64,000 bases of DNA, taken from positions 70,436-134,435 of the forward strand of contig JBLWGC010000185.1 in NCBI GenBank assembly GCA_048772705.1, written 5' to 3'. Position numbers and translations under genes: made by a program. Source of the stretch: Leidyana gryllorum EB-2025a (Eukaryota > Protista > Apicomplexa). The notes under the pieces were generated by a model that searched no databases, was not told the origin of the DNA, and saw only the letters and a list, made by a program, of their open reading frames with translations. Below, one piece after another: positions 6,046-59,688 of this stretch; position 1 is the stretch's first letter; each line of letters opens with the position of its first letter.

Positions 6046-9000
6046 ATGAACCTTCGGTCTGTAATGGTATTTATCGCACCTTATTGGTTTGGCTTAGGAT
6101 TGGTTTGCAAAGATGACATGTCAGAACTCTATGGCGGGGGCGGTATGGCACTGCCGGAGTTACAATTAGACGGCAAGAGACGAGTCCTATCAGCACTCAC
6201 ACCGCCTCCTTCTGTCCACCAAAGCTTATCAACGGAATTGGATGTGTTGATTCCGGTGCTGCTCGATGCGATTTCTCTGATTGATCAAATGGGCCTCCCC
6301 CCGTCAGAGGCGCTCCCACACTATTTGGATCCCGTATTGGCTGACAGTCTATTGACCATTCTGAACCCGCTGAGCGAAGCTTTCTACCAAGCTGCTCTCC
6401 TGGAAACGCTGGATGCGCTCCCCGAGGGCTCTGCGAGAGCTGCCGAGCCTCCCGATATGCCCCGGAACGATTCCACTGTGCTTACTGACGGAGAGCGAGC
6501 CTTCGTTGAAGAGACTCTTCTACGCGCTCTGTACCAAGCTGTGTGGGACGACGGCATACAGCTGTTGCCGCGCTCCGTCTCCGATTGGGAACTCGCGCAG
6601 AAGGAGTACGAGTTGAATCATCTGAGACTCTTCGTTGACGCTGTTCATCGCGCAGTTCATCGTATGAACAATACTTCCACCTCAGAGGCGACGACGCCGG
6701 CGGAGCGGCTCTCCGGGCTACGGTTGACCAAACGAGCTGTGGACAATCAGCAAGCGGCCGTCGATAAAGTCGTCAGACGACTTCAGCAACAGCAGTCTGG
6801 CGGTCCTCTGGGGGCCATAATGGGTCGACTGGGAGGCGGCAATGGTGGTGGACTCTCAAATTTGGTCCAAAGCTTCGTGGTCAAAGAGCTCGACGGCACC
6901 GGTTCCAGAAGTAAAAGTGCTTTCCGAATGGATCCGAGGTGTGACGCGCACGAGAAGGGTACCTGCTGCTTCTTCGGAGACCTGTGTGATCCGATAGCTC
7001 AGTGCGTCGCAGAAACCAATCCCCAGTCATTGGGCGACTTGGCCAAGTTGGTACCACAGTGCATCTGCCCAGAAGGATTCAAAGGCGATGGACGCAAACG
7101 CGGAGACGGATGCGTCAACATTGATGAATGTAAAGAGGGACTCGCCTATTGTGACCAGAAATGCATAGATATGGCTCCGGGATACCGCTGTGAGTGCCGT
7201 GACGGCTTCAGACTCCAGCCGGACGCCCGAACCTGTCGAGACATTGACGAATGCAAAGAAGGCTTGCACGATTGCGACGATGTATGTATCAATACCAAAG
7301 GAGGTTTTGAGTGTGGATGCTCATCTGGGTACAAACCCGACCCAGCGAACCCACACAAATGCAATGATATAGATGAATGTCTTGAAGCCAGCATCAGTAA
7401 TCGCGAACTGTGTCAGTTCATGGATATGTGTACCAATCTACCCGGGTCATATAGCTGCTGGTGCCCCCAGGGGACTATGCCGGACCCAGACAGTCCCGGT
7501 GCGTGCATTGATATTGATGAATGCACTGACTTGGATGAGGACCCCTGCCCCAATAGTCGTGGCGGCGGCGGCACATTTGATCCTGCCGCCCCGACACAAT
7601 GGTGCGAGAATGTGTATGGTGGCTACAACTGTATGTGTCTCCCCGGTCTTAAGGAAGCCAAGACAACAGCCCCTGATCCTTTGCGAGATCTGCGACCACG
7701 TGAAATTAGCGCTTACGACGGACGCGAAATTGATTTACGTCAACAACAGTCAGTAATTCGAGCTTCTGAGTTGTTGTGTGCTGATATCGACGAGTGCCGT
7801 GAGGATGCACACATGTGTCCAGGTGACGATGTACAATGTGTTAACGAATATCGATCTGCTTTTTGTCGATGTTTGGAGCCCGGAAAGCAGTGGAACGCTT
7901 CAACCAAACGTTGTTACAAAGACATCACGTGTCGTGCCGATACTTGTGGTACAGACCCTAATTCAATGTGTGTCCAGTATGATGACGATTTTGAATGCAC
8001 TTGCCGTGAAGGCTTCCAAGTTGGACGCCACACGGCTGAAAAGTCTGAGTTTAGCTGCGAAGATGTCAATGAATGTGCAGCTTCCAATGATATTTGTCCA
8101 CCGAATTCTACCTGTCAAAACTTGATAGGCACTTACAAATGTGTTTGCGATCATGGATTTCTGCAAGCCGCTGACGGCACATGTCTGGATATCGATGAAT
8201 GTGCAGCCGGAGCGTGTGCAGGCCCCTGTCTAAATTTGGACGGAGCTTTCACATGCGGTTGTCCACACGGAACAATGGCGAAAGGACGTACAGATCCCAC
8301 CCAAGTACGAATGTGGTCACTTCTGAACGACAAAATTAATTCGGCGCACTCTCAAGATACGCGAATCGCTGCGTTCCATGTTGAGACTCGGGAATCTAAG
8401 TTGAGTTGTGAACGTTACGATGTGTGTACAGAATCTGAAGGATTGCTTTGCGGTGCGGGAGCTCAATGTCGAGGTACTGAAGGCACCTTCAGCTGTGTCT
8501 GTCCCATCGGAACCGAGATGAGGGCCACAAAAGTCAAAGACTATCCGCTATTGGAAGATACACTCACCCGTCAGATATCACTCCACATCCGCACTCTTCC
8601 ATTTGATGCTGTATCCGATCTCGATCCACTGACCCTACTCACTGCCGTAGCCTCCTTAGAGCCTCCAGCCCCACTATGGAAGATCAACGCTATCCCTTGG
8701 CAAGCGTCTTCGCGCTTTCACATTCATCGAACTGAGAAGCAAACAACAGCCTTATTGGATCACCCTTCCCGTGAGACAATGTTGGCATTATTGCTCGAAC
8801 TGATCTCCGAAGCTGAAGTGACCTCATGTGAGCCTCGCGACTTGCCCCGAAACAGTTTACCAACTCGTTTCGCCTTCCTTCTGAGTACTCCACCCCCTGC
8901 GCCACACAAGTCGCAATTCCCTCCTCGCACTGTGGCGCCTCCTCCTCCAGTCGCTGCAGCTGTGGACTATGACGGCAACAAGAAGCGACGTCCCAATTCA

Positions 9001-10593
9001 GGAGGTTTAGTCGGAGGATTACTATCCCAACTCGGACGTTTCACGAAGCCTCAGTCTCCCGTGCGGCGGGCGAACACCCAACCCATTGTCAATACGGAAG
9101 GGTTTCCCTTGGAGGACGTCGACGAGATCGTGGACGAGTCGCTGGAAGCGGCTTTGTCTGATGGAGAGGTCACATTGGTCGCTGGGCCGGGACAGTTCGG
9201 ACTGGACGGCCCCAATGGATTGCCACCCCGAACGCCTCGGTACCTCTACGACGACATTGGCGGAGCTGTGGCTTTGAATGTGTCTGAAGTGCGTTTGGCC
9301 GATCGCAAGCGGACTCGCAAACTCCGGGAGTTCTTGGAGACTCGATTAAAGCGCGCCGAGGGCTCACTTAACGTTGTCGATGTACACCGTCGTCTCAACT
9401 ATTTGTCATCGTCCACTACGCCCTCTGATGTCGGGAGCGACGAGATGAACGGCAACGATAGCCAAACTGAGACGAGGAAGTCTGAGGGTTGGAACGCCTA
9501 TTGGCTGTTGGAACGTGTGATAGGCCCAAATGCGACGGCCTCCGTGAAACCTTTAGTCTCAGACGTGATGGATTTGTGGAAGTCATCGGGAGACACAATG
9601 GCACTGATGCGCAAAGCGGCTCGGGTGGTGTCGGATATAACCAAAACGGACGAGGAGTGTGAGGGGGGCGAGAAGAAGTGTAGCGGGTGGTCGAACTTTT
9701 ACGAAGAGGTCAAATCGTATGTCAAATCCTCAGAGTTTTACGCGGTGGAGGAGAAGACTGTGGAATCTTTGACAGAATATCTGCAGCGAAGTGGATCTGT
9801 GGCCTCAAATGGCGGTGGTGATAATGATGACAGCCGCACCATCGAGGCGTTACTGCTGACGACAATTCTGGAGCATTTGAGTCGGGCTGTGCCCGAACTC
9901 GGGTTGCTGACGCGTCCGCTGATGGAGCTTAGTCGACTGCAGCAGACAGAGTCGACGGCTTCGGGATCTTCTGAGAGCCACGGTGTGTCTGAGGTGATGA
10001 GCGATCTTTTGCGGAATCAGACCATTGGACGCGAACTTCCGATACTGAGACTGGCCACAGCCGACGAAAAGGGAGTGGAGCGGCTGCGTAGAGCGGTTCG
10101 CGCTTTGATGGAGAGTGGAGGTGGCGATCGGGCGGTACCACACACCGTACAGACGATATTGGAGAATGGTCCAAATGGAACGGGCCCGTTGTTGAAAGAG
10201 GGAATGTTGAGAGCGGTTCATTCTGAAGGTATTGAGGATCTGATTGTGACAACGACAAAGATGTGGACGAGCGATGAAGTTATCAAATCTCTGGGTGGCG
10301 GTGGCGATAAGAACGGGACGGCGACGCGCGCTCTGTTTGGAAGAATGAACAATATCGCAGCTTTAATCACTTTGGTTCCGAACCGAATGCTCCGACCATC
10401 GGGTCCTTTCCGAAACATTGTGAGCTCTCTTATGGGAGGCTTTGAATTACTGAATGGGAAGAATAACAACAGTACACAAGACGGCGGTATGGTGAAGCAG
10501 TTGGTCCAATCGTTGGTTCCCGGGGGTGGCGGTGGGCGAATGATATCACCGAAACCCATTCGGAAGATTGGAGATGCGACTGCTGCTGATTGA
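6046..10593 (+). CDS. Secreted calcium-binding EGF-repeat protein (microneme/adhesin-like)
   Basis: 1515-aa single ORF with a hydrophobic N-terminus. About a dozen C-x-D-I-D-E-C...C-x-N-x-x-G-x-Y/F-x-C-x-C units lie in the central third, flanked by helical non-Cys regions. Confidence 0.85.
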   Translation: MNLRSVMVFIAPYWFGLGLVCKDDMSELYGGGGMALPELQLDGKRRVLSALTPPPSVHQSLSTELDVLIPVLLDAISLIDQMGLPPSEALPHYLDPVLADSLLTILNPLSEAFYQAALLETLDALPEGSARAAEPPDMPRNDSTVLTDGERAFVEETLLRALYQAVWDDGIQLLPRSVSDWELAQKEYELNHLRLFVDAVHRAVHRMNNTSTSEATTPAERLSGLRLTKRAVDNQQAAVDKVVRRLQQQQSGGPLGAIMGRLGGGNGGGLSNLVQSFVVKELDGTGSRSKSAFRMDPRCDAHEKGTCCFFGDLCDPIAQCVAETNPQSLGDLAKLVPQCICPEGFKGDGRKRGDGCVNIDECKEGLAYCDQKCIDMAPGYRCECRDGFRLQPDARTCRDIDECKEGLHDCDDVCINTKGGFECGCSSGYKPDPANPHKCNDIDECLEASISNRELCQFMDMCTNLPGSYSCWCPQGTMPDPDSPGACIDIDECTDLDEDPCPNSRGGGGTFDPAAPTQWCENVYGGYNCMCLPGLKEAKTTAPDPLRDLRPREISAYDGREIDLRQQQSVIRASELLCADIDECREDAHMCPGDDVQCVNEYRSAFCRCLEPGKQWNASTKRCYKDITCRADTCGTDPNSMCVQYDDDFECTCREGFQVGRHTAEKSEFSCEDVNECAASNDICPPNSTCQNLIGTYKCVCDHGFLQAADGTCLDIDECAAGACAGPCLNLDGAFTCGCPHGTMAKGRTDPTQVRMWSLLNDKINSAHSQDTRIAAFHVETRESKLSCERYDVCTESEGLLCGAGAQCRGTEGTFSCVCPIGTEMRATKVKDYPLLEDTLTRQISLHIRTLPFDAVSDLDPLTLLTAVASLEPPAPLWKINAIPWQASSRFHIHRTEKQTTALLDHPSRETMLALLLELISEAEVTSCEPRDLPRNSLPTRFAFLLSTPPPAPHKSQFPPRTVAPPPPVAAAVDYDGNKKRRPNSGGLVGGLLSQLGRFTKPQSPVRRANTQPIVNTEGFPLEDVDEIVDESLEAALSDGEVTLVAGPGQFGLDGPNGLPPRTPRYLYDDIGGAVALNVSEVRLADRKRTRKLREFLETRLKRAEGSLNVVDVHRRLNYLSSSTTPSDVGSDEMNGNDSQTETRKSEGWNAYWLLERVIGPNATASVKPLVSDVMDLWKSSGDTMALMRKAARVVSDITKTDEECEGGEKKCSGWSNFYEEVKSYVKSSEFYAVEEKTVESLTEYLQRSGSVASNGGGDNDDSRTIEALLLTTILEHLSRAVPELGLLTRPLMELSRLQQTESTASGSSESHGVSEVMSDLLRNQTIGRELPILRLATADEKGVERLRRAVRALMESGGGDRAVPHTVQTILENGPNGTGPLLKEGMLRAVHSEGIEDLIVTTTKMWTSDEVIKSLGGGGDKNGTATRALFGRMNNIAALITLVPNRMLRPSGPFRNIVSSLMGGFELLNGKNNNSTQDGGMVKQLVQSLVPGGGGGRMISPKPIRKIGDATAAD

Positions 10594-21171: not shown

Positions 21172-24100
21172 ATGAGGCCAACCCAATTCTCGGAGCGAGC
21201 CGTCTTTCTCGACCGGCCAACGCGACGTCGTCCACCTCCTGCGTTTCTGGCACACTGGTTTTGGGCTTCTCGGCTTAAACTGGCAGCAAAACGCAAAGAC
21301 CCCTCGCGGCCAGTGGTGATACTGGAAGTTTCGGACGAGCCACCAACAAAGTCACGGAAGCGCGTAGTCCCGATGGCGGCCAGACGATCTCTGACGTTTA
21401 TATCCTCTGACTCGTCGTCGTCTTCTGCCAGCGATGAGGAGGTATCCATAGTTCGGACCAGTCGCCCAGTCAAACGTACTGACGCCCAACCGCCGACGAA
21501 ACACGACCCCGATGACGGCTGCTATTCGAGCCTCGAGGAAGGAGAGGTCCCCGAGAGAAGACGTCCGGCCCCCGCCGCCCCTAAAGAAGTGTGGTACTCG
21601 AGCGGTGATGAGGAAGAAGCAGCAGCAGAGAAGAAAGACAATAGTGTTGGCAAACGTTCAACTCACAATGGCCGCCAGTACACGTCCAGTCGGGCGGCCT
21701 GCAATGTGGTCCGTACCATTGCCCCCTCTCGCGACAGCAGAAGACGATCTCGGTCCCCCCCCTCCCGTTCCGGCCGAGCGCGACCCGTCTCCCCTTCGCC
21801 CTCCCCCTCCCCCTCCCCCCGGCGCCATCATCGACGCTCGCCCTCTCCCAAACCCCGCGGCCACCGTAACGATTACGTTCCCTCTTCGGAAGAGGACGAG
21901 GGACAAATCAAACTCCGCAATATAAGCAGACGACGACGACGACGTCAACCACGCGACGCCGCCTACTCGGACGACGAGGAACCTTCTTCACACGACGAGG
22001 GACGGAGACGCCGCAGCTATTCCTCTGACGATAACCGACGCAAGAAACCCGCCCTCCGTCGCCGCGTCTCGCCCCGCCGCGTCTCGCGCTCAGTCTCGTC
22101 TTCGTCCTCGGACAACGAAGAGGTCGCTGTCACTCGCCGACCTCTCAATCTGCCCGCGCAAAAGGGCGGCAGATACTCTGACGAAGAGGACGGGAGATAT
22201 TATGACGACCGCTCGGACGACCGGTCCCGTTCCTCCTCGCCGTCCGGCAGCGACAGCGGACGGAGGGGATATCGACGCAGACCTGAGCATTACGACGTCT
22301 CGGAGGCACAGCATCGGGGTCGAATCGTCGGCATCGGGCGGAAGCTTCAGCCCACCGCTGTGGTTGTCAACGAGTCATTAGCGGCTCCTCCATCGTCGTC
22401 GTTGAGATCGAAACTGTTGACGTCGTCTCAGGGAACCACCACCAACGGATCTCAACTGTTGACGTCGTCTCAGGGAACCACCACCGGATCTCCGGCTATG
22501 GGAATTCGTATCGCTCCTCCGTCGTAAGTTTGCACCGCCGCTCAGCTTCACCTTTTTCGTCTCCCCCACAGAATGGCGGCCGCAGCAGCTTTAGAAGCGG
22601 CTGGGAAAATCGTCCCGGCGTGGATGACCAAAGGAGAGGTGGTCCACAAGACGCTGGAGGAACTCGAAGAAGAGGCCAAACAGAAGACGATGGAACACAC
22701 CAAGAAGGCCAATGCGCGACTGAAGATTGACGATGCCGTCATCCAACAGCGACTTCAGGAAAAGTCTCGAACATTGGGCGGGACTCCGCTTCGGCGAATA
22801 CGGCCGCCTCGTGGAGCACCCCCCAACCGTAATGTGAGAATGAACCACCTAATGCGGTGACAAAAGCTCCCCATCTGAAGGTTCCATCAGTTGCCTCTGT
22901 AATCAAAAGTGCGGGAAAATCAGTGCCTTCGCCTAAACATCGACAAAGCGCTGCCTCCTCGCCTCTCAACCCCCTTCTGTCGCGCCCTGCCCTCTCCAAG
23001 CCTCAGCCGCGGAAAACATCCACCTCCTCGGCACCAAAGTCGGGAACAACAGCTACCGCCCCCACAGGGCGCACCACCACACCCAACAACCGCCCCCCAC
23101 TACCGCCTCCCAAGCCGGAGAGAACCGCCTCGGTGCACTCAGCTTCCACCTCCACGAAGCCGCCCAAAGCACCCAGCCCCAGAAAGGACTCGTCATCCAA
23201 ATCGTCAATCTCCACCTCCACAGCGCCCACCCGGGGATCCACTTCCACCATCAACCTCACCAAAATTGAGATCGCTACACTCCGCACTGTAGAACGCCAT
23301 CTCAGCGCACTACCGCCCGGCATCGTGGACCCACCTATCAACTCCACTGCCCAGAAAGGCGCATCCTCGCCCTCCGCGGCCCTCCCGCCCTGGAAGTCGT
23401 TGATCAAAGAGAATCCGTCCCCATCGGACCGCTTAACGCTGTTCGCAGCCCACCGCGGAGTGCGCCTTGGCGCTATAATCGCTATGCAGGCCTGCAACGC
23501 ACAAAGCATATATATACCCCCTTTGGTCACTGCTTTCCATCGTAACATATTCCAAATGATGTGGTGGGATCATTACTTCACTCGATCTGTAACCAACGGA
23601 ATCGATCTGGCATCTGTATACCTTGAAGCTCACAAGGGCGCCATACCTGAAATTGAAGGCTGCTGGGAACTCTTCAAGTCAAACTATGTCGCGTCCCAAG
23701 TCCAAACCAAGGATAGATCACCCAGACTCAAGAAGATTGCACCCACAAAGATCGTTGACATTATAGCTGAATATTGCCATTTCAGTTTTGAACCAAAAGG
23801 GTCATCACAGTATTGGTGGTATCGTGGTCTCTTGCACGAATTGCTCCGAAACACAAAGTATGCGAATCTGGATCAATATCCATTTGACTTTCGAGGTTCC
23901 GTTGGTATTAACATTTTTCCACCACCTCCGCCTTCCCCCGCCACTTCCAAGTCACAGGGCCGGTGCGTAATATCTGCAGACAACAATCTCACCAATGTCG
24001 GTGCCTATGAGTCATTCTGTGCCTATTACGCCGCTGATGTTGCTGCTTCTGTGCTGAGGGCCCTCCCACAATTGCCGTCGCCGAAAGGACACACGTGTGT

Positions 24101-27100
24101 GTTCGCCATTGATGTTCCCACATTAACCTATGCTTTCAACTCTTTGCTTAGTCAATTGATGCGTTGGCAAGTCGGTGTTGCACAACAACGCTGTAGCCTT
24201 CAAGCGCGCCAATCGTCTGCACAAATGCTGACATACTTCCTGTCACGAGGTCCCGATCATGTGTGGTGCACAAACAGTCTAAAATGTGAGCTGATCTCTA
24301 CCATCAGACGTTCCATCCGAGTCATGCCGCTCACCGAGGTGCCCTCTCAGCGCTCGTCGATCTGGTATTATTTCAAAACCCCTAGCGTCCTGAGGATCGT
24401 CCTCCAACACCTTAACCTTGATTATCGTGAAAGTATATTGGAACGGGCTAGAGAGGACCTTGGAGACCGTGGGCGAAGCGCTAGATGGCACTGGCTCAAA
24501 CGATTCTTCGAGACTGCGTGCAAGGGTTCTGTGAGTTTTGACGTTGGACTGGACCGGTATCGATTTGATTTTCGATATTTTGTTCCGACGGCTAATGGCG
24601 CTGACTCCACACCCAGTGCCTCCCCACCCATCTGCCGAGACTACCTTCGCCCGATAGCAATTCCTTTGGATCCCCAGCAACCTGTGAGGAGGAAACAGCT
24701 CACAATGCCCTGGCCGATCTCCTTCTTCGTTCATGACGACGGACAGAAGCAGCATAACAGCCGACGAGTCACTTGTAGTCCTCAGACCCAGGCCATGAAT
24801 CGAGGATCTATTGTGGCAGATTGTCTGCTGGTGGGTATCGTTAGCTCCAAGCCGCCTATCAAGACTGGTGACGGAGGAATAGCATATGTAGATGTCGAGT
24901 TGCTGCGGAGATGTGTCACTCAAGAGCTCGAAACGATGGATATTGATACTGATCCCCACAAAGCGCCGTTTGAAGTCAAGCAGTTGGCAAAGAATCTTCG
25001 GGAAGCGATCAATATGAATGGTGGCAAAGAGGTGTGGCTCAATGGGCCTCCGAAGAATCGGCATACAATATGGGTGCCGTTCGAGTTGGACGACCGCAAC
25101 GCTCCGTTGTGGTTGAGCGAAGCTATTGTCAATACAATCAATGTGGGTGACATTAAAGTTCCGCCGCCTGACAATTTGCGGTATTGGTGGCTCCGAGGTT
25201 TGTGGGGAACGTTATTGCGGCACACCCCCTACGAGAATCTGGATCGACCGCCGATAGATCTTCGGCAAAATCTGGCCATTTCTCCCCCTTTGGTGGCTCT
25301 CTCCCAAAAGAACCATCGAGCTTTCCAGCTGGGCATTGAGTGTGGACACCGCTTTCAGCGCATTGTCCTCGAAGGGTCGCTTGCAGCCACGTCCACAGCG
25401 AAAGCTTTCTCCATAACGCGTCTGCCGCTCCTGAGCGAAGCCGTCAAAGGATGTCTCGCCGCCTTTAGACAGATTGCCTCCGACACCCGGATTTTGAGCA
25501 CCGTCATCGAGTGTGCGGAGAAATGTCGCAACTTTTATGAGAGTACCGGTCAATGCCCGACTGACAACGTTTATGGGAGGATATCGTCCGCCTGTTTGCC
25601 AGTTGAGTCCATGACTGATTACAATTGGCTCGCCTCTGCCCTCTACTGTTGTTTCACACAAGTCAACATCGAGCCTCCACTGAAAGGCGGGTTTGACCTC
25701 ATTTACAAAGTAAATGTGTCAGCCTGGTGGCGTGCGCGGGGTTTCTTCACTCTTCTGCTTCATCTCAGTCCCTTTGCCCATTTAGACACGCGACCCTTCG
25801 ACTTTGGTCTCGAGGCAGCGGCACAAGCGAATAAGGCTGACAGCTCCGACATCAGCGAGTCACAATCGGAGAGTTTGGCTAATCAAAGCACTGAGCGACC
25901 AGAGGCAGTCTCCCGAGCGGTGGAAAAGGCTCCGACACGCTCGAAAGATGCAGACGTACACAAGCGTCAAGCTGCCGCGGAAGAAAGAGCTGTTCGGCCC
26001 CCCGTCGTGACCCAGGTGACCTCTGGAGAGGCAACTGGAACTGGAACTGGAAACACCGTCACTGGCTTGTGTCCCAGTCCACCGGTTCCCTCAGAGCCCG
26101 TGGCACCAGTGCCCTCACCTTCGGGAACGAGCAATATGTCGCGCATTACCTCCGCGTCTCCGACCCTTGAGGAGGCCACAGAGGAGTACCGACTATTGGA
26201 TCCTTCGGGAGACGAGGCGGACAACTTTGTCAATATGGGAATGGATTACGCCTACCGACTCTTACGGTCGCTTCCGTTAGCAAAGATTGTCGCTGGCGGC
26301 GACCCGGAGGGGGATCAGGAGGCAGATGAGCGGTTTGAAGTGATTAAATCGCAGAAGCCGACCCCATCGACGTCACCTCGCAAAGGAACGAAAAGGTTCA
26401 ACTCTGCCCTGAGAGCTCTCGCCACATATTTTGTTATCGTTTATGGAGGGGATGACGACGAGAGCGAGGAGTCGAGCCGAGCAGTTGTGGAGCAGGCGTT
26501 CGGCACTCTGCTTAAGAGCGCTCAGAGCACGCTGGAGGCTCTCAGAACGACTCAGAAGGTCGCCGACTGCAGATCTTTCGCATTGGCGGTGGTACATCGG
26601 ACACCACCCAAATATTGGAAGTTTGACAATGATCTGAGTGTGACGCCTGATTACTGGCTGCTGATGGGATTCTGGAGAATCTTTCTGCGGGGCACTCCGT
26701 ATCGACATTTGACAACGAAACCAATTGATATGCGTCGGACTGTGAAACGCGGAGGCGTTCGGATTGTGCGAGTGCTACCGAGACTTACAACTCCGTCACA
26801 GGGGTGGTCACAATCCAGCAGATGGGCCGCCGGAAGGTTGTCGGGGCTCTTTGATGTGATGGATGGGCAACTGGAGTGCACAGGTGCCAAGCTGGTGATT
26901 GACGAGGTGACTGCGGGGGAGGGCTGGTCGGCATTCTTCAAGTGGGCCATCAAGGACTCGGGTCGGATGATGGAGTGGCAATCGAACGAAGGGGGGGACA
27001 TCGAGGCACTCAGGACATTGTCTAAGAGACTGACTGCATCAGTGAGTTTCCAGGCAGTGGAAGGCGGTAGTGTGGAGTCTGTGGTCGCCCCCTGGGTGTC

Positions 27101-27641
27101 GAGAACAAAGTTGGCGTTTGTGGAAGTGATGGTGAAGCAGGTCAAACAATATGATCTGTGCGCACTCCGTACAGAGGATGTGAAAGCGTATGTGTGGGTT
27201 CGTGCGTTCTGCGAGAGTCTGGTGGTGGACACCCCGTACGAGTCACTGACTGTGAAGCCTCTGGACTTTCGAGTGCCACAAGTTGTGCCGGGACTTCAGC
27301 CGGCGAGATTTACGGGAATTATGGAGCTCCATAGTGCAGCGGGACCAGCGGACGGGAAAGTAGCGATGTCTGTGGGAGTGATCCACAAGTCGTACTACAG
27401 CTTATATTATCGAGCACTCGGAAATCTTCGGTTACAACGCGTGGATTGCGATCCGATCGTTTTACTGCCCCCGTTACGACCAAGTACAGTGGGACGCCTC
27501 TGGAGTACGATCACCGGTCGGACGGCCGGCGACGAACCACCACACACACCAACAGAGTCGTCACCCTCGAGTACACCGACCAGTGAATCGCCACTTGTGC
27601 GAGCTATGAAGTTCTTCTTCCGATCTGGAAGTGCCGTCTGA
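21172..27641 (+). CDS. Giant hypothetical protein (~2100 aa): RS/Pro-rich disordered N-terminus plus six repeated helical modules
   Basis: ORFs 21172-22527, 22573-22860 and 22857-27641 join in frame through introns ~22524-22571 and 22829-22867. The last ORF opens at a GTG just after an in-frame stop, with no ATG near its start. An alternative start is ATG 21373. Confidence 0.7.
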
Positions 27642-27748: not shown

Positions 27749-28333
27749 TTAGAAAGTATATGAATGGTGCTGCTGCGAAGCGGTAAGCATATTTGTAGTG
27801 CCCTTTAGGTCGACCTGTCCTCCGATGGGGAGGAGGCCGATACCAGCTGCCGCATACGCAAAATATCCCAGCATAACTAGCGAAAGGACTATGTAAACCG
27901 CACGTTGGAGAACGAGGTTCACCGGGAAGTCCACCGACTTCTGCAGGTCGTCAAACTGTTTGTTCCCACTCATTAGAACTCTGAAGGCTGTGAGCATCGC
28001 GTATCCGACAATGATGAATGAAAAGAAACCGCTTCCAGTCATCCAGATCATAAAGGCATTCAGAGCCAAACTCTTCACCGGCATAGTCGCAAGAGCCCAG
28101 GCGTTCTTCTGTATCACAGCCTTAGCTGCAACGCTGGACGTATTCTGCCACGCACTGCTGACACCTTCGCTGGTCTCAACACGTAGACGCTCCTCCTCTT
28201 GAACTATAGCTTCAGCCACATCGCGGCTCTGTAAAGACTTGAGTAGCGTTCCATGACACTTCCAGTTGACCAACTGGTTCAGAGCTTTATTGGACTTGCG
28301 CCCTGAGACCCCCCACCGACGCAAAGCTTCCAT
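27749..28333 (-). CDS. EMC4: ER membrane protein complex subunit 4
   Basis: KNAWALATMPVKSLALNAFMIWMTGSG...YAAAGIGLLP (DUF1077 pattern). Confidence 0.8.
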   Translation of the reverse strand: MEALRRWGVSGRKSNKALNQLVNWKCHGTLLKSLQSRDVAEAIVQEEERLRVETSEGVSSAWQNTSSVAAKAVIQKNAWALATMPVKSLALNAFMIWMTGSGFFSFIIVGYAMLTAFRVLMSGNKQFDDLQKSVDFPVNLVLQRAVYIVLSLVMLGYFAYAAAGIGLLPIGGQVDLKGTTNMLTASQQHHSYTF

Positions 28334-28360
28334 TCTGGAGTGAGGAATTTTTGAGTAAGG

Positions 28361-29208
28361 ATGTTGAGGACCCACGGAGCTGCTCGGCGGCAGCCCGTGC
28401 AGAAGGACTCCACGGTACCCCAACCCGCTCAGATACGTCTTCAGAAAGGTGAGCCTACCGTCGCCTCCAACATTACCCACATCGATCAAACAGAATTCAG
28501 CGAATTGGAACTACCGCCCCAGTGTGTTCTTGTTGACGTCAAGCAAGAGGACCTGGCGGAGTTCGGCGTGATAATCAAGCCAGACACTGGATACTGGCAG
28601 GTGAAGTTCCACAAACTTGTGTTCGAACATGTGCGTGTGTGTGCGCGGGCGCGGGCGCGAGCCCGACTGGAGATGGGTGTAACGACTTTAATAACGACTA
28701 TTGGTGTGAATCTGGGCTCTGGGTGCTGAACTGTTGTCTGTATGCCAACTTGCAGGGCGGTAAGTTCCGATTCAAGATCAACGTCCCCGTGACCTACCCC
28801 CACGATCCCCCCAAAGTGCGGTGTGAAACAAAGGTATGGTAGCAGTTGGCGTCGAAGGACGTTTGATCCTTCGTCACTGCTTCCTGTGTAATATGGTCGC
28901 TGGCAGGTATTCCACCCCAATATTGATTTGGAGGGAGCAGTATGCCTCAATATACTACGCGCCGAGTGGCGTCCTGTGTTATCGCTGTATGCGGTCATTG
29001 CAGGCCTACTGCATCTTTTCCTGGTAATTGAGGTTTTGTTTTCGCTGAGAAATGTGTGTGTGAATAGGCACCAGAGGTCTTTGAGCCCCTGAATCAGACG
29101 GCTGCTGATGAGTTATCACGTAACCCGTACCATTTTGGGGAAATGGTGAAAGCTTCGATGCAAGGCCGCGTTTTTTGGAAGGGGATAGCCTTCCCTGCAG
29201 TGCTTTGA
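28361..29208 (+). CDS. UBC12: NEDD8-conjugating E2 enzyme, 5 exons
   Basis: AQIRLQK|EFSELELP...IKPDTGYWQ|GGKFRF...[13 protein letters not shown]|[25 protein letters not shown]...PLN. Confidence 0.88.
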
Positions 29209-29244: not shown

Positions 29245-30900
29245 ATGCTGAGCGGCAATGTGAGTGACCTTTTAATGAGCCCCGAAACACTGGGTAGCTG
29301 TGCAGATAGCTCCAACACTTGACACGGATGTTCGGGCGGCTTTACGAGAACGAGGACAGCCTCAGACCTTGTTTGGAGAGGGGGTGGGTCCATTTTTCGT
29401 CACACTCGCGATTGAATCCTTTTTAGCCATTTGAAAGGAGAGAGCGTCTCAAAGCCCTCTTAGTCCAACAGTCATCGACGGAGCGAATATCGACCACCAC
29501 TGCCCAAGATGCTGCCGACGAGCCCATAGTGGTAAGTGGTGAAAAGTGTGTGTGTGTGTATATCTACTGGCGTGTGTGGCAGGAGGAGTTGTTCTTTACG
29601 GAGGGAACGGCGGCTTTGAAGGCTGCGCGTTTGTGGGTGGCTCGTTATTCGATCCCGCGATCTCACGCACGTCTGCAAGCGTATCGAGAACGATTTCAAA
29701 ACGAGAATCCCTTGGAGGCTGAGGCGGAGCGATTGTCTTTCAACAATGATATACAGCGCCGATTACAGATTCAGTTGAGTCAGTCGGCGGATACGCGGCC
29801 GTTGAGTGCGGGCGCGTTCTCCCCGGACTCGAAGTATTTGGCTACGGGATCTTTCTCATCGAACATCCATTTTTGGAGCACGCAGGACGGCCAGAAGGTG
29901 GGCAGCGTGGCGCCCGATATTCACCTGGAGCGGGTCCACGGGCTCGCCTGGTACCCTTTCTGGCGGTCTTCGGACGAGAGCGGCGCACCGAACTCGTCGT
30001 CGGACCTTTTGGCTCTGGCGTCTTGCGACGCTGGTGGGCAGGTGTGCTTATGGAAGTGGGGAGATCAGAGCGAGCCGGCTGCTCGTGTGGGAATGCTTCT
30101 TGGGCACGAGGACAGAGTGAATCGATTAGACTTTCACCCGAGCGGTCGTTATTTGGCCTCGAGTTCCCACGACGAGACGTGGAGATGGTGGGATCTGCAG
30201 ACCCAAACAGAATTGTTGCTACAAGAAGGGCACGCGCGAGCTGTCTATGCTGTGAGGCATCACCCCGACGGTTCCATTGTGCTTTCATCGGACTTGGGAG
30301 GCGTTATGCGGGGGTGGGATCTGCGTACGGGGCGTACAGTGATGACTCTGACTGGTCACGTCAAACAGGTTCTGAGTTTGGACTTTCACCCAATGAGTGA
30401 GTGCTTCAATGTGTTTGGGCTCCAATTGACTGTCAATGTCACCGCGTTGTCTCAGGTTCTCACATTGTCGCGTCGGCTTCTGGAGATCGAACAGTAAAAC
30501 TGTGGGATATCCGGAAAGCGGACTGTTTCGAGACGGTTTTGGCCCATAAGAATCTGATCAGTACTGTCAAGTTTGAGGTGAGTGCGGCTGCAGGCGGTGC
30601 AGACTTTGACTGACTCTCTGTTTGCAGCCAAAAGAAGGCCGTTATATGTTGACTGCGGGTTTCGATCGCGAAGCGCGTCTTTGGTCGAGCGACACTTACA
30701 CGTGTTTCAAAGTGCTGCCGGGGCACGAAGGGTTTATAATGTCTGCGGACATCGCGCCAGGTGGGTGGGACTTATTAGAGTTGTGGACATTATTAGAGTT
30801 TGCAGATGGACGGCGTGTCGGGACGATGGGTTACGATCGAACGTTCAAATTGTGGCACACGGTGGATGAGGATGACGGTATGGGTGAGGGAAACGGCTAA
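29245..30900 (+). CDS. PRP4: U4/U6 snRNP WD40 protein Prp4, multi-exon
   Basis: SFM motif PTLDTDVRAALRERGQPQTLFGEG|PFERRERL, then FFTEG...ARLWVARYSIPR and WD40 repeats including FHPSGRYLASSSHDETWRWWD..LLLQEGH. Confidence 0.92.
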
Positions 30901-57456: not shown

Positions 57457-58536
57457 ATGAAGACTTGGTGGTTGGCTGCGCTGTGCTCATTATCGGTGCA
57501 CGGGTTTGAGGGAGGGCACTTTCCCTTTAACCTGTTTCACGGCCGGCACAGTCGGAAACCCCACCCGAGCAAATCGTCGCCGAGTCAGAACCGCAATATA
57601 ATTGAGGATGATTTGGGACGTCAGCAGGAGGTCTACTTTGCGAATTTCAGTGAACCTTTACGACTTGCGCTGTTGCGTCACGATGGGCCCGCTGAGCGGA
57701 CTCTATTGCTGTTCGCTCGCGTGGAAGCATTGGCACGCGAACACAATCTATTGCCTCCCGGGGAGACTCCCCGTTTATTTGGTTTATATTGGGACAGCCG
57801 AGGGGCGCCTGAGTTGAAGAAGGACCGGTCGGCGGCTGGTGTGTTGGTCCGGACGATTCCGGATCACGTCTCTGAACCTGACCTTCTGTTTGTTGAGACT
57901 CGGAGGGGCCCACATGTGGTGATGCATCAACACGGAGAGCACAGCAAAATCGGAACTCTGTATTCGACGATTTATAACAGAGTGTTTGACAAATGGAATC
58001 TCGAAAATCGCACTCAGACTTTGGACGGCGACGACGATTATGGGGCCGACAGCGACGATGAGGCCCCCTATGGCGAGGAGGAGAGGCGAAAGTCGTCTGC
58101 CAAGAAGAAGCCGTCATCGACAAAACACGGCAAGAAGCGGTTGCTCAAAAAGGGGGCCACCAGCTCCCCGACTCCGGCTGCAACGACGACGTCCGCGAGT
58201 TCGTTGACGAGTTCGACGTCGACGACGACCACCACCACAAAGGCGACGTCAAAAGGAGGAAAGAAGAAGGAGAAGAAGACAACGACGTCTACGGCCGCCA
58301 CTGGCGGCGACGGGGGTTCATCGGACGCGGGGGGAGCCGAGCCAGAATTGATTGATGAGGAGGACAGCAGTGAGTCGGCCGACGATCGTCAGACCATTCC
58401 GGACGAGGCTCCCGTGTTGGAGGAATATGGAATGGTCCCTTCGACCGCTATCGCGTGGTCGTCAGAGTTGGTGACAGTGTTATATGTACCGATAGCCTCA
58501 ATGCCCCCGAACGTCACTCCAGAGGCATTGAGCTGA
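57457..58536 (+). CDS. GyrI-like protein 3, secreted, with low-complexity insert
   Basis: Signal MKTWWLAALCSLSVHG, then LRLALLRHDGP...FGLYWD...GPHVVMHQHGEHSKIGTLYSTIY...[insert]...APVLEEY...ELVTVLYVPI. Confidence 0.75.
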   Translation: MKTWWLAALCSLSVHGFEGGHFPFNLFHGRHSRKPHPSKSSPSQNRNIIEDDLGRQQEVYFANFSEPLRLALLRHDGPAERTLLLFARVEALAREHNLLPPGETPRLFGLYWDSRGAPELKKDRSAAGVLVRTIPDHVSEPDLLFVETRRGPHVVMHQHGEHSKIGTLYSTIYNRVFDKWNLENRTQTLDGDDDYGADSDDEAPYGEEERRKSSAKKKPSSTKHGKKRLLKKGATSSPTPAATTTSASSLTSSTSTTTTTTKATSKGGKKKEKKTTTSTAATGGDGGSSDAGGAEPELIDEEDSSESADDRQTIPDEAPVLEEYGMVPSTAIAWSSELVTVLYVPIASMPPNVTPEALS

Positions 58537-58671: not shown

Positions 58672-59688
58672 TCAAGCAGCATAGGCGTAGAGTGGTTCTT
58701 CTTCACCGGGGAGGGCAGTGTCGTCAGTGGTGGTTATATATCCAGTCGAGTCGTGTTTGTTGAGGGCGGTGGAGGCGTTGTTGAGGAGAAGGGGAGTGGT
58801 TTCATCGACGGAGACGGGCATTCCTCTTTGTTCTTGGAGTTCGCAGTATTTGGATAGAGAGACGAATCTCCAGCCTTGGCTGGTGGCTTCGGGTATGAGT
58901 TGGGCCATTGCGTTATAGGAGTGTTCTCGGTCGTGTACGACAATGATAGCTCCGCTGTGGAGACGGTGTTTGACGAACCATTTGACAAAGCCTTCCTTCT
59001 TGATTTGGGCGTCCCAGGGGTAAAGGTCTCCGAGTACACATTTGTAGCCGTTGCGTTTGACGACTTGGAGCATCGCGTCATTGAACCATCCTGAGCCGGG
59101 CCTGAACCACTTTCGAGCGAGACGTGGAGCGGTATCGGTTGGCCAGAGTCTTTTATCGGTTTCCCGTAGCTGTCTTTCGAATTCCTCAATAGAGAGTTTG
59201 ATGCTGGGGAAGTCTCCCATCATGTGGTTTCCCGTCTCGCAGCCGATATTCCATATTCTCCGCTGCACTTCTTTCCGATACGCGCCGGTGATGGTGTTGC
59301 CCATAACCATAAAAGTTGCGGTGGCATTGTTGGCCTCGAGCAGATCCAAGTAGTCGGGTGTCCAGTGGCTAATGGCGTCGTCGATCGTGAGGGCGACGAC
59401 CTTTTCGATGGGCGGTTCGAATTTCCAGAGCACATTGGGCCACTTCTTCGCTGCACTTTTGATGAGCCAACGGTGTTGCAGAAACCCTGACATTGCCAAG
59501 AAAAATGCAACGAACAATATAACCCCCACAACGATCAATCCAATAGTGCACCAATCCATTCCGTAATAGTCTTTGTTCTTGGAGGAGCGTTTCGATTGTT
59601 CTTTCGAGCGCTGTTCTTCAAAATCTCCCTCCGCAGAGGTCTCCGAACACGTTTTCGCCCTCTCAATGCTTCTCCGCGTTAAAACCAT
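58672..59688 (-). CDS. Membrane-anchored polysaccharide deacetylase (CE4/NodB family)
   Basis: Single N-terminal TM, then VALTIDDA, ATFMVMG, ETGNHM, WFRPGSG, YPWD and GAIIVVHD. Intronless. Confidence 0.88.
   Translation of the reverse strand: MVLTRRSIERAKTCSETSAEGDFEEQRSKEQSKRSSKNKDYYGMDWCTIGLIVVGVILFVAFFLAMSGFLQHRWLIKSAAKKWPNVLWKFEPPIEKVVALTIDDAISHWTPDYLDLLEANNATATFMVMGNTITGAYRKEVQRRIWNIGCETGNHMMGDFPSIKLSIEEFERQLRETDKRLWPTDTAPRLARKWFRPGSGWFNDAMLQVVKRNGYKCVLGDLYPWDAQIKKEGFVKWFVKHRLHSGAIIVVHDREHSYNAMAQLIPEATSQGWRFVSLSKYCELQEQRGMPVSVDETTPLLLNNASTALNKHDSTGYITTTDDTALPGEEEPLYAYAA

Follow-up and report, generated by a model that had tools for sequence, protein, structure and literature searches.

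A recurrent ~30-residue motif in a predicted modular protein of the gregarine Leidyana gryllorum

What does a short, aromatic motif that recurs along one large predicted protein stand for: the visible remnant of a duplicated domain, an element that acts by itself, or a mere likeness of composition? The question is raised by an open reading frame (ORF) of 1594 codons at 22857-27641 (+) in a 64,000-nucleotide (nt) stretch of the Leidyana gryllorum EB-2025a genome (assembly GCA_048772705.1, contig JBLWGC010000185.1, positions 70,436 to 134,435 of the forward strand), hereafter the window, from whose first letter all coordinates are counted. The window is eukaryotic-looking DNA with ~52% GC. A sequence-only reading of it had reported six copies of the motif, and all six peptides were found exactly where that reading had placed them, in the frame of this one ORF. 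Our analysis leads us to conclude that the gene is best explained as encoding a lineage-restricted, single-copy, modular protein.

Statistical reality and age of the motif copies

The motif is real beyond chance for five of its six copies. When the six copies are aligned with MAFFT, they give the consensus YWWLRGFxxxLLRxTPYxxLDxxPFDFR, in which one Leu and one Asp are invariant and the final residue is Arg in five of the six. The layout is that of a Trp-rich amphipathic stretch (YWWLRGF...LLR) leading into a T-P-Y turn, the invariant Leu and a closing P-x-D-x-R, and the helical hydrophobic moment over the first 14 residues is large in copies 1-5. In a leave-one-out test, a hidden Markov model (HMM) was built from five copies and searched against the window translated in all six frames (94,558 residues). 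The top unrelated match in these searches scored 6.7-7.8 bits, whereas five copies were recovered at 18-43 bits. These are copy 1 (23811-23894, starting at amino acid (aa) 319 of the ORF; 38.6 bits), copy 3 (25182-25265, aa 776; 43.0 bits), which is the nearest to consensus, copy 4 (25722-25808, aa 956; 24.5 bits), which has a 1-aa insertion and Gly in place of the final Arg, copy 5 (26652-26735, aa 1266; 27.8 bits) and copy 6 (27189-27272, aa 1445; 18.2 bits). Pairwise BLAST between copies, copy 2 aside, gave E values down to 7e-10. Copy 2 (24486-24575, aa 544) is degenerate, with a 2-aa insertion, and we read it as a decayed copy at the expected position. From start to start, successive copies lie 225, 232, 180, 310 and 179 aa apart.

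The copies are not the product of a recent duplication or of gene conversion. Nucleotide identity in the four copies that align without gaps falls from 0.61-0.71 at codon position 2 to 0.43-0.64 at position 1 and to 0.32-0.54 at position 3, identical residues are mostly encoded by different codons across copies, and a repeat search found no direct or tandem DNA-level repeat at the motif sites. This pattern of codon-position identity and the lack of a DNA-level repeat mean that the copies are ancient and under purifying selection on the protein. Across the 15.5-Mb genome, the motif profile matches nowhere but at these six places (next match E 0.6), and the gene is single-copy, with no paralogue in that genome. 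A DNA-level repeat or mobile element was also considered as the source of the copies and was rejected, as none was found at the motif sites and the gene has no genomic paralogue.

What the motif marks within each module

The extent of the similarity was determined from Smith-Waterman scores set against 300 shuffles per pair, by interval relative to the motif. The score is 8.0 in the interval from -4 to +30 (7.4-15.5 for pairs without copy 2), -0.06 from -60 to -4, 0.25 from -120 to -61 and 0.06 from +30 to +90. Little aligns outside the motif when single modules are compared by hhalign, and the inter-module comparison against shuffles revealed no significant similarity of the module bodies to one another. 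Because similarity is confined to the motif interval, the demonstrable repeat is an element of 30-34 residues and not a module of 200 residues. By eye, an "AP-helix, short strand, PP" pattern recurs 15-45 residues upstream of the motif, with no statistical support.

The composition of the flanks differs on the two sides of the motif. In all six copies, the fraction of P, S, T, G, Q and N is 0.40-0.64 in the 25 residues after the motif versus 0.20-0.35 in the 40 residues before it, and each copy closes off, on its downstream side, a segment that is hydrophobic and looks ordered. From its N terminus, the long ORF comprises an S/P/T/K-rich low-complexity region (22867..23423, aa ~4-189; S 18.5%, P 16.9%, T 11.6%; P/S/T at least 40%), followed by six modules that each end with the motif copy of the same number, all on the forward strand: module 1 (23424..23906, aa 190-350), module 2 (23958..24587, aa 368-577), module 3 (24672..25277, aa 606-807), module 4 (25290..25820, aa 812-988), module 5 (26238..26747, aa 1128-1297) and module 6 (26748..27284, aa 1298-1476). 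Stretches with at least 40% P/S/T lie directly after copies 1 and 2. Between modules 4 and 5 there is, judging by composition, a long acidic S/P/T/A-rich linker that contains no Trp (25821..26237, aa 989-1127, 139 residues) and whose P/S/T-rich core (aa 1045-1119) starts ~60 aa downstream of copy 4. The C-terminal tail (27285..27641, 118 aa plus stop) has no Pfam match and, by the HMM with filters off, no motif copy. A seventh copy spotted there by eye (YYSLYYRALGNLR...DPIV) was rejected since the motif HMM gives it no support, even in that mode.

Secondary structure was read from a low-confidence AlphaFold prediction on the single sequence of aa 277-1476. In this model, the first half of the motif is helical in every copy, which is a hint only at a mean predicted local distance difference test score (pLDDT) of 35.9. 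Helix prevails in modules 4 and 5, while modules 2, 3 and 6 come out mixed or chiefly as coil, and modules 2 and 3 contain a few predicted strands. Coil is also predicted for model residues 715-840 (aa ~991-1116), within the linker after copy 4. The sequence-only reading had proposed that each copy closes a larger helical domain. The hydrophobic segment before the motif, the sequence richer in P/S/T/G/Q/N after it and the low-confidence helix all speak for this proposal, which is borne out only in part, the module bodies showing no significant similarity to one another.

The explanation that we favor, and to which we give an even chance, is that the protein consists of six mainly helical domains of ~160-210 residues that arose by ancient duplication and are carried on flexible linkers, each closed by the motif, and that it may serve as a multivalent scaffold. 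The motif would be the C-terminal closing piece of each such domain, built from an aromatic amphipathic helix, the TPY turn and a P-x-D-x-R strand. The aromatic side of its helix would be buried in the core of the domain, with the conserved Arg and Asp holding the last strand in place, perhaps as an Arg-Asp bridge. The closing element would have stayed under constraint for its part in locking each domain, while the domain bodies diverged past sequence recognition. With six domains of like build on flexible linkers, the protein would be multivalent. If an arginine/serine (RS)-rich exon predicted upstream is part of the protein, which is likely, the protein would work in the nucleus, plausibly in RNA processing.

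A bolder version of this explanation, which we consider doubtful, is that the ~30-residue signature defines a new domain family, possibly with a new fold, so far confined to a tandem of six domains in a single gregarine protein, which would act in the nucleus as a hexavalent scaffold linked to RNA processing via the RS arm. If true, this would supply a good starting point for a new domain family, with a sharp signature under selection that marks the domain ends in a protein of the gregarines, a lineage in which recognizable relatives are missing for most genes, and a marker with which to locate and align orthologues in gregarine genomes still to come and to approach the fold of the domain. No long-standing question would be opened by it; orphan modular proteins abound in divergent protists, and this one has so far been linked to no process.

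Several results weigh against the explanation by closing domains. Copy 2 fails the leave-one-out test. AlphaFold run with the six modules as an alignment reached a pLDDT of 39.4, which, like the 35.9 of the single-sequence model, is too poor for a fold comparison. No orthologue was found across the libraries searched. Finally, the splice model, and hence the nuclear assignment, is drawn from predicted splice signals only.

Other explanations account for some of the same observations. The sharp edges of similarity around the motif would be expected if it were a short element acting on its own, such as an amphipathic helix docking one common partner, that has been placed six times between unrelated segments to make a hexavalent platform. 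We regard this as possible but rather unlikely, because the flanks upstream of it are hydrophobic and, by their low P/S/T/G/Q/N fraction, differ from the disordered surroundings of typical docking helices, because the motif itself is very hydrophobic, with up to three Trp/Tyr in a row, as a core helix would be, and because the regular ordered segments of ~160-210 residues between linkers fit domain duplication more simply. A single continuous helical solenoid or superhelix, in which the motif would mark a long-period super-repeat, is decidedly improbable. It would be in keeping with the dominance of helices in modules 2, 4 and 5 as predicted at low confidence and with a spacing that, setting the long linker aside, is roughly regular, but P/S/T-rich linkers of 30-140 residues break the array after copies 1, 2 and 4, some strands are predicted at low confidence in modules 2 and 3, and there is no HEAT, ARM or TPR match in Pfam.

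That the ORF encodes a polyprotein, with the conserved ...D-[FLM]-R that ends each unit serving as a processing signal for the release of six different products, appears very unlikely. A conserved element does close each unit before a variable linker, and its last residue is Arg in all copies except one, but that one, copy 4, ends in Gly, a hydrophobic helix-turn element of 30 residues far exceeds a cleavage site, no signal peptide is evident by eye at the N terminus of putative exon 1 or exon 2, and Pfam searches of the window ORFs reveal no protease context nearby. Nor are the units detectably alike outside the 34-residue motif, as they would be in a polyprotein of homologous units of the nematode polyprotein allergen or filaggrin type. 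Chance or a compositional artefact as the source of the motif likeness has a next to nil probability: copy 2 alone would not pass, but for the five other copies this account is refuted by leave-one-out scores far above a background of at most 7.8 bits.

Search for relatives and comparison with known systems

As far as the libraries reach, which may lack records of this genome or of a very near one, the motif belongs to no described family, which agrees with what had been claimed from the letters alone. Searching the whole repeat ORF against Pfam with hmmscan gave nothing above cut-off, the top match being ECM11 (12.7 bits versus a cut-off of 27.1), and searching the six modules, exon 2 and the tail separately gave nothing better than E 0.018, with all matches under their cut-offs. 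The latter value belongs to RNase_J_C on exon 2, which we rejected for that reason. None of HEAT, ARM, TPR, HAT, TOG/CLASP_N, RAP, FAST or WD40 reaches the Pfam gathering threshold in the repeat ORF. Searching PDB sequences by phmmer gave no match at E up to 1, and a resemblance to proteasome beta2, the top PDB profile match (E 0.06, 16.7 bits), is not significant. We also looked for specific signatures in the 1594-aa ORF. No zinc fingers or Phe-Gly (FG) repeats are present, and a regular-expression scan found neither Walker A (GxxxxGK[ST]) nor Walker B (hhhhD[DE]), the motifs by which a six-module, single-chain AAA+ ring of the dynein or midasin type would be recognized. A degenerate P-loop in module 3, GPPKNRHT, was discarded as an isolated resemblance, as there is no Walker motif anywhere in the ORF.

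Wider searches gave a similar result. The motif profile, run against 1.84 billion representatives, had six matches, all of them junk tandem-repeat ORFs or TPR-like repeats and none with TPY...PxDxR; a fragment bearing a lone motif could fall below the significance line of a library of this size, so that an absence of relatives is not proven by it. No relative was found by a word-indexed search of 5.8 billion proteins with residues 180-1500, in which low-complexity candidates were crowding, or with residues 600-985, by a feature search of the ESM Atlas, or by metagenome scans with the protein and with the aligned copies 3 and 1. An exact-product look-up for the repeat protein returned no record, and a genome search found no relatives of this genome. 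A protein without relatives is an ordinary situation for gregarines. Most Porospora proteins are absent from Gregarina niphandrodes, and <18% of Porospora orthogroups are common to any other apicomplexan, including G. niphandrodes (PMC9250747). The repeat protein resembles gregarine orphan proteins in having no detectable homologue outside its own genome, and differs from them generally in having an internally conserved, selected motif.

Comparison with TOG arrays, which is not based on a database match, and with Sfi1 highlights both similarities and differences. TOG domains, ~220-250 aa long, each contain six HEAT repeats and conserved residues in the loops that bind tubulin. Like the TOG arrays of XMAP215/Dis1/Stu2, the predicted protein has ~2000 aa and several putatively helical modules of ~200-250 aa, separated by S/P/K-rich linkers and each with a Trp-containing signature. 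Unlike these arrays, it has no TOG, CLASP_N or HEAT match in Pfam, and its conserved signature occupies the last ~30 residues of the module, whereas the TOG signature lies in intra-HEAT loops near the start. The two models, at pLDDT 39.4 and 35.9, are too poor for a HEAT architecture to be read from them. The centrin-binding repeats of Sfi1 occur every ~33 residues on one continuous helix, in the order LL...F/L-x2-W-K/R. The likeness to them lies in a short helical motif with Trp and Arg/Lys that recurs along one large protein. However, our motif departs from the Sfi1 pattern in that it is spaced 179-310 residues apart and has the reverse order (WW-x-R ... LL-R) followed by TPY...PxDxR.

Gene model, RS-rich arm and neighboring genes

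The sequence-only reading described a protein of ~2100 aa with an RS-rich N terminus, a length that a three-exon model reproduces at 2127 aa with a single terminal stop by a frame and length check, but that depends on predicted splicing, the repeat ORF itself having 1594 codons. An upstream exon and intron are needed because ~200 codons of open frame precede the first ATG-encoded Met of the long ORF. Putative exon 1 (21172..22523, +) encodes a disordered-looking arm of 450 aa, rich in RS, Ser-Asp/Glu (SD/E) and Arg, within an ORF at 21172-22527 whose stop codon is overlapped by a GTAAGT donor. Putative intron 1 (22524..22571, +; 48 nt), as read from the sequence, runs from GTAAGT through a pyrimidine tract to CAG and preserves the frame. 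As a frame continuation there follows putative exon 2 (22572..22828, +), which would encode ~85 charged, helix-like residues (MAAAAALEAAGK...) starting MAAAAALE. Putative intron 2 (22829..22866, +; 38 nt, GTAATG...AAG) joins it in frame to the long ORF, as does an alternative intron 2 (22834-22880, +; 47 nt, GTGAGA...AAG). Exon 3 would be the long open frame with all motif copies (22867..27641, +; ORF listed as 22857-27641, 1594 aa).

The RS-rich ORF and the repeat ORF are quite probably joined as one predicted gene. Alternatively, the ATG at 22573, 46 nt past the RS-rich ORF, could open a separate gene. The predicted splice signals and intron sizes of the repeat gene fit this genome because a neighboring gene has similar putative introns (50-59 nt). 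That neighbor, a PRP4-like WD40 gene at 29529-30900 (+), appears to be split by introns at 30397-30455 (59 nt) and 30578-30627 (50 nt), which were deduced from shifts that restore the WD40 frame. Both are of the form GTGAGT...CAG, and the second holds a CTGAC branch-like box. Intron lengths in G. niphandrodes have their mode at 37 bp (PMC9250747). GTAAGT is not enriched in the window, with 12 and 11 occurrences per strand versus ~15.6 expected.

The 450-aa RS-rich ORF contains 24 RS/SR dipeptides, 16% Arg and 17% Ser, along with the basic clusters RRRRRR, RRRR and RRKK, a composition that is typically seen in nuclear SR-related proteins. The RS arm is accompanied by no RRM, PWI or similar domain, and RRM, the mark of classical SR splicing factors, has no Pfam match on any part of the protein. 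With its arm rich in RS/SR, S-P, acidic serine tracts and basic clusters, the predicted N terminus resembles that of scaffolds of the SRRM1/SRRM2/SON type, a comparison for which the linkage of the arm is itself predicted. Such scaffolds either are disordered for the most part or possess PWI, cwf21, G-patch or dsRBD domains, none of which was detected in the repeat protein, and they have no counterpart to its six ordered modules. Near the 3' end of the RS-rich ORF, a 42-nt unit is tandemly duplicated at 22406-22485 (two copies, 92-95% identical), which encodes ...LLTSSQGTTT... twice and appears to be a young in-frame expansion.

Downstream, the repeat gene is followed tail-to-tail, 108 nt from its stop, by a homologue of EMC4 (endoplasmic reticulum membrane complex subunit 4; 27749-28489, -; Pfam E 1.9e-18). 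To reach an orthologue by synteny, this neighbor was used in a word-indexed protein search, but no relative emerged at E 1e-5, a sign of how far the genome has diverged. Of the 18 long ORFs examined outside the repeat gene, 10 had no Pfam match at the thresholds used. A 1515-aa ORF at 6046-10593 (+) is rich in calcium-binding EGF domains (EGF_CA E 9.5e-44) and has the look of an extracellular adhesin. Elsewhere in the window, an ORF with a GyrI-like small-molecule-binding domain (57457-58536, +) adjoins a polysaccharide deacetylase ORF (58672-59688, -), and both of these domains are commoner in bacteria and fungi.

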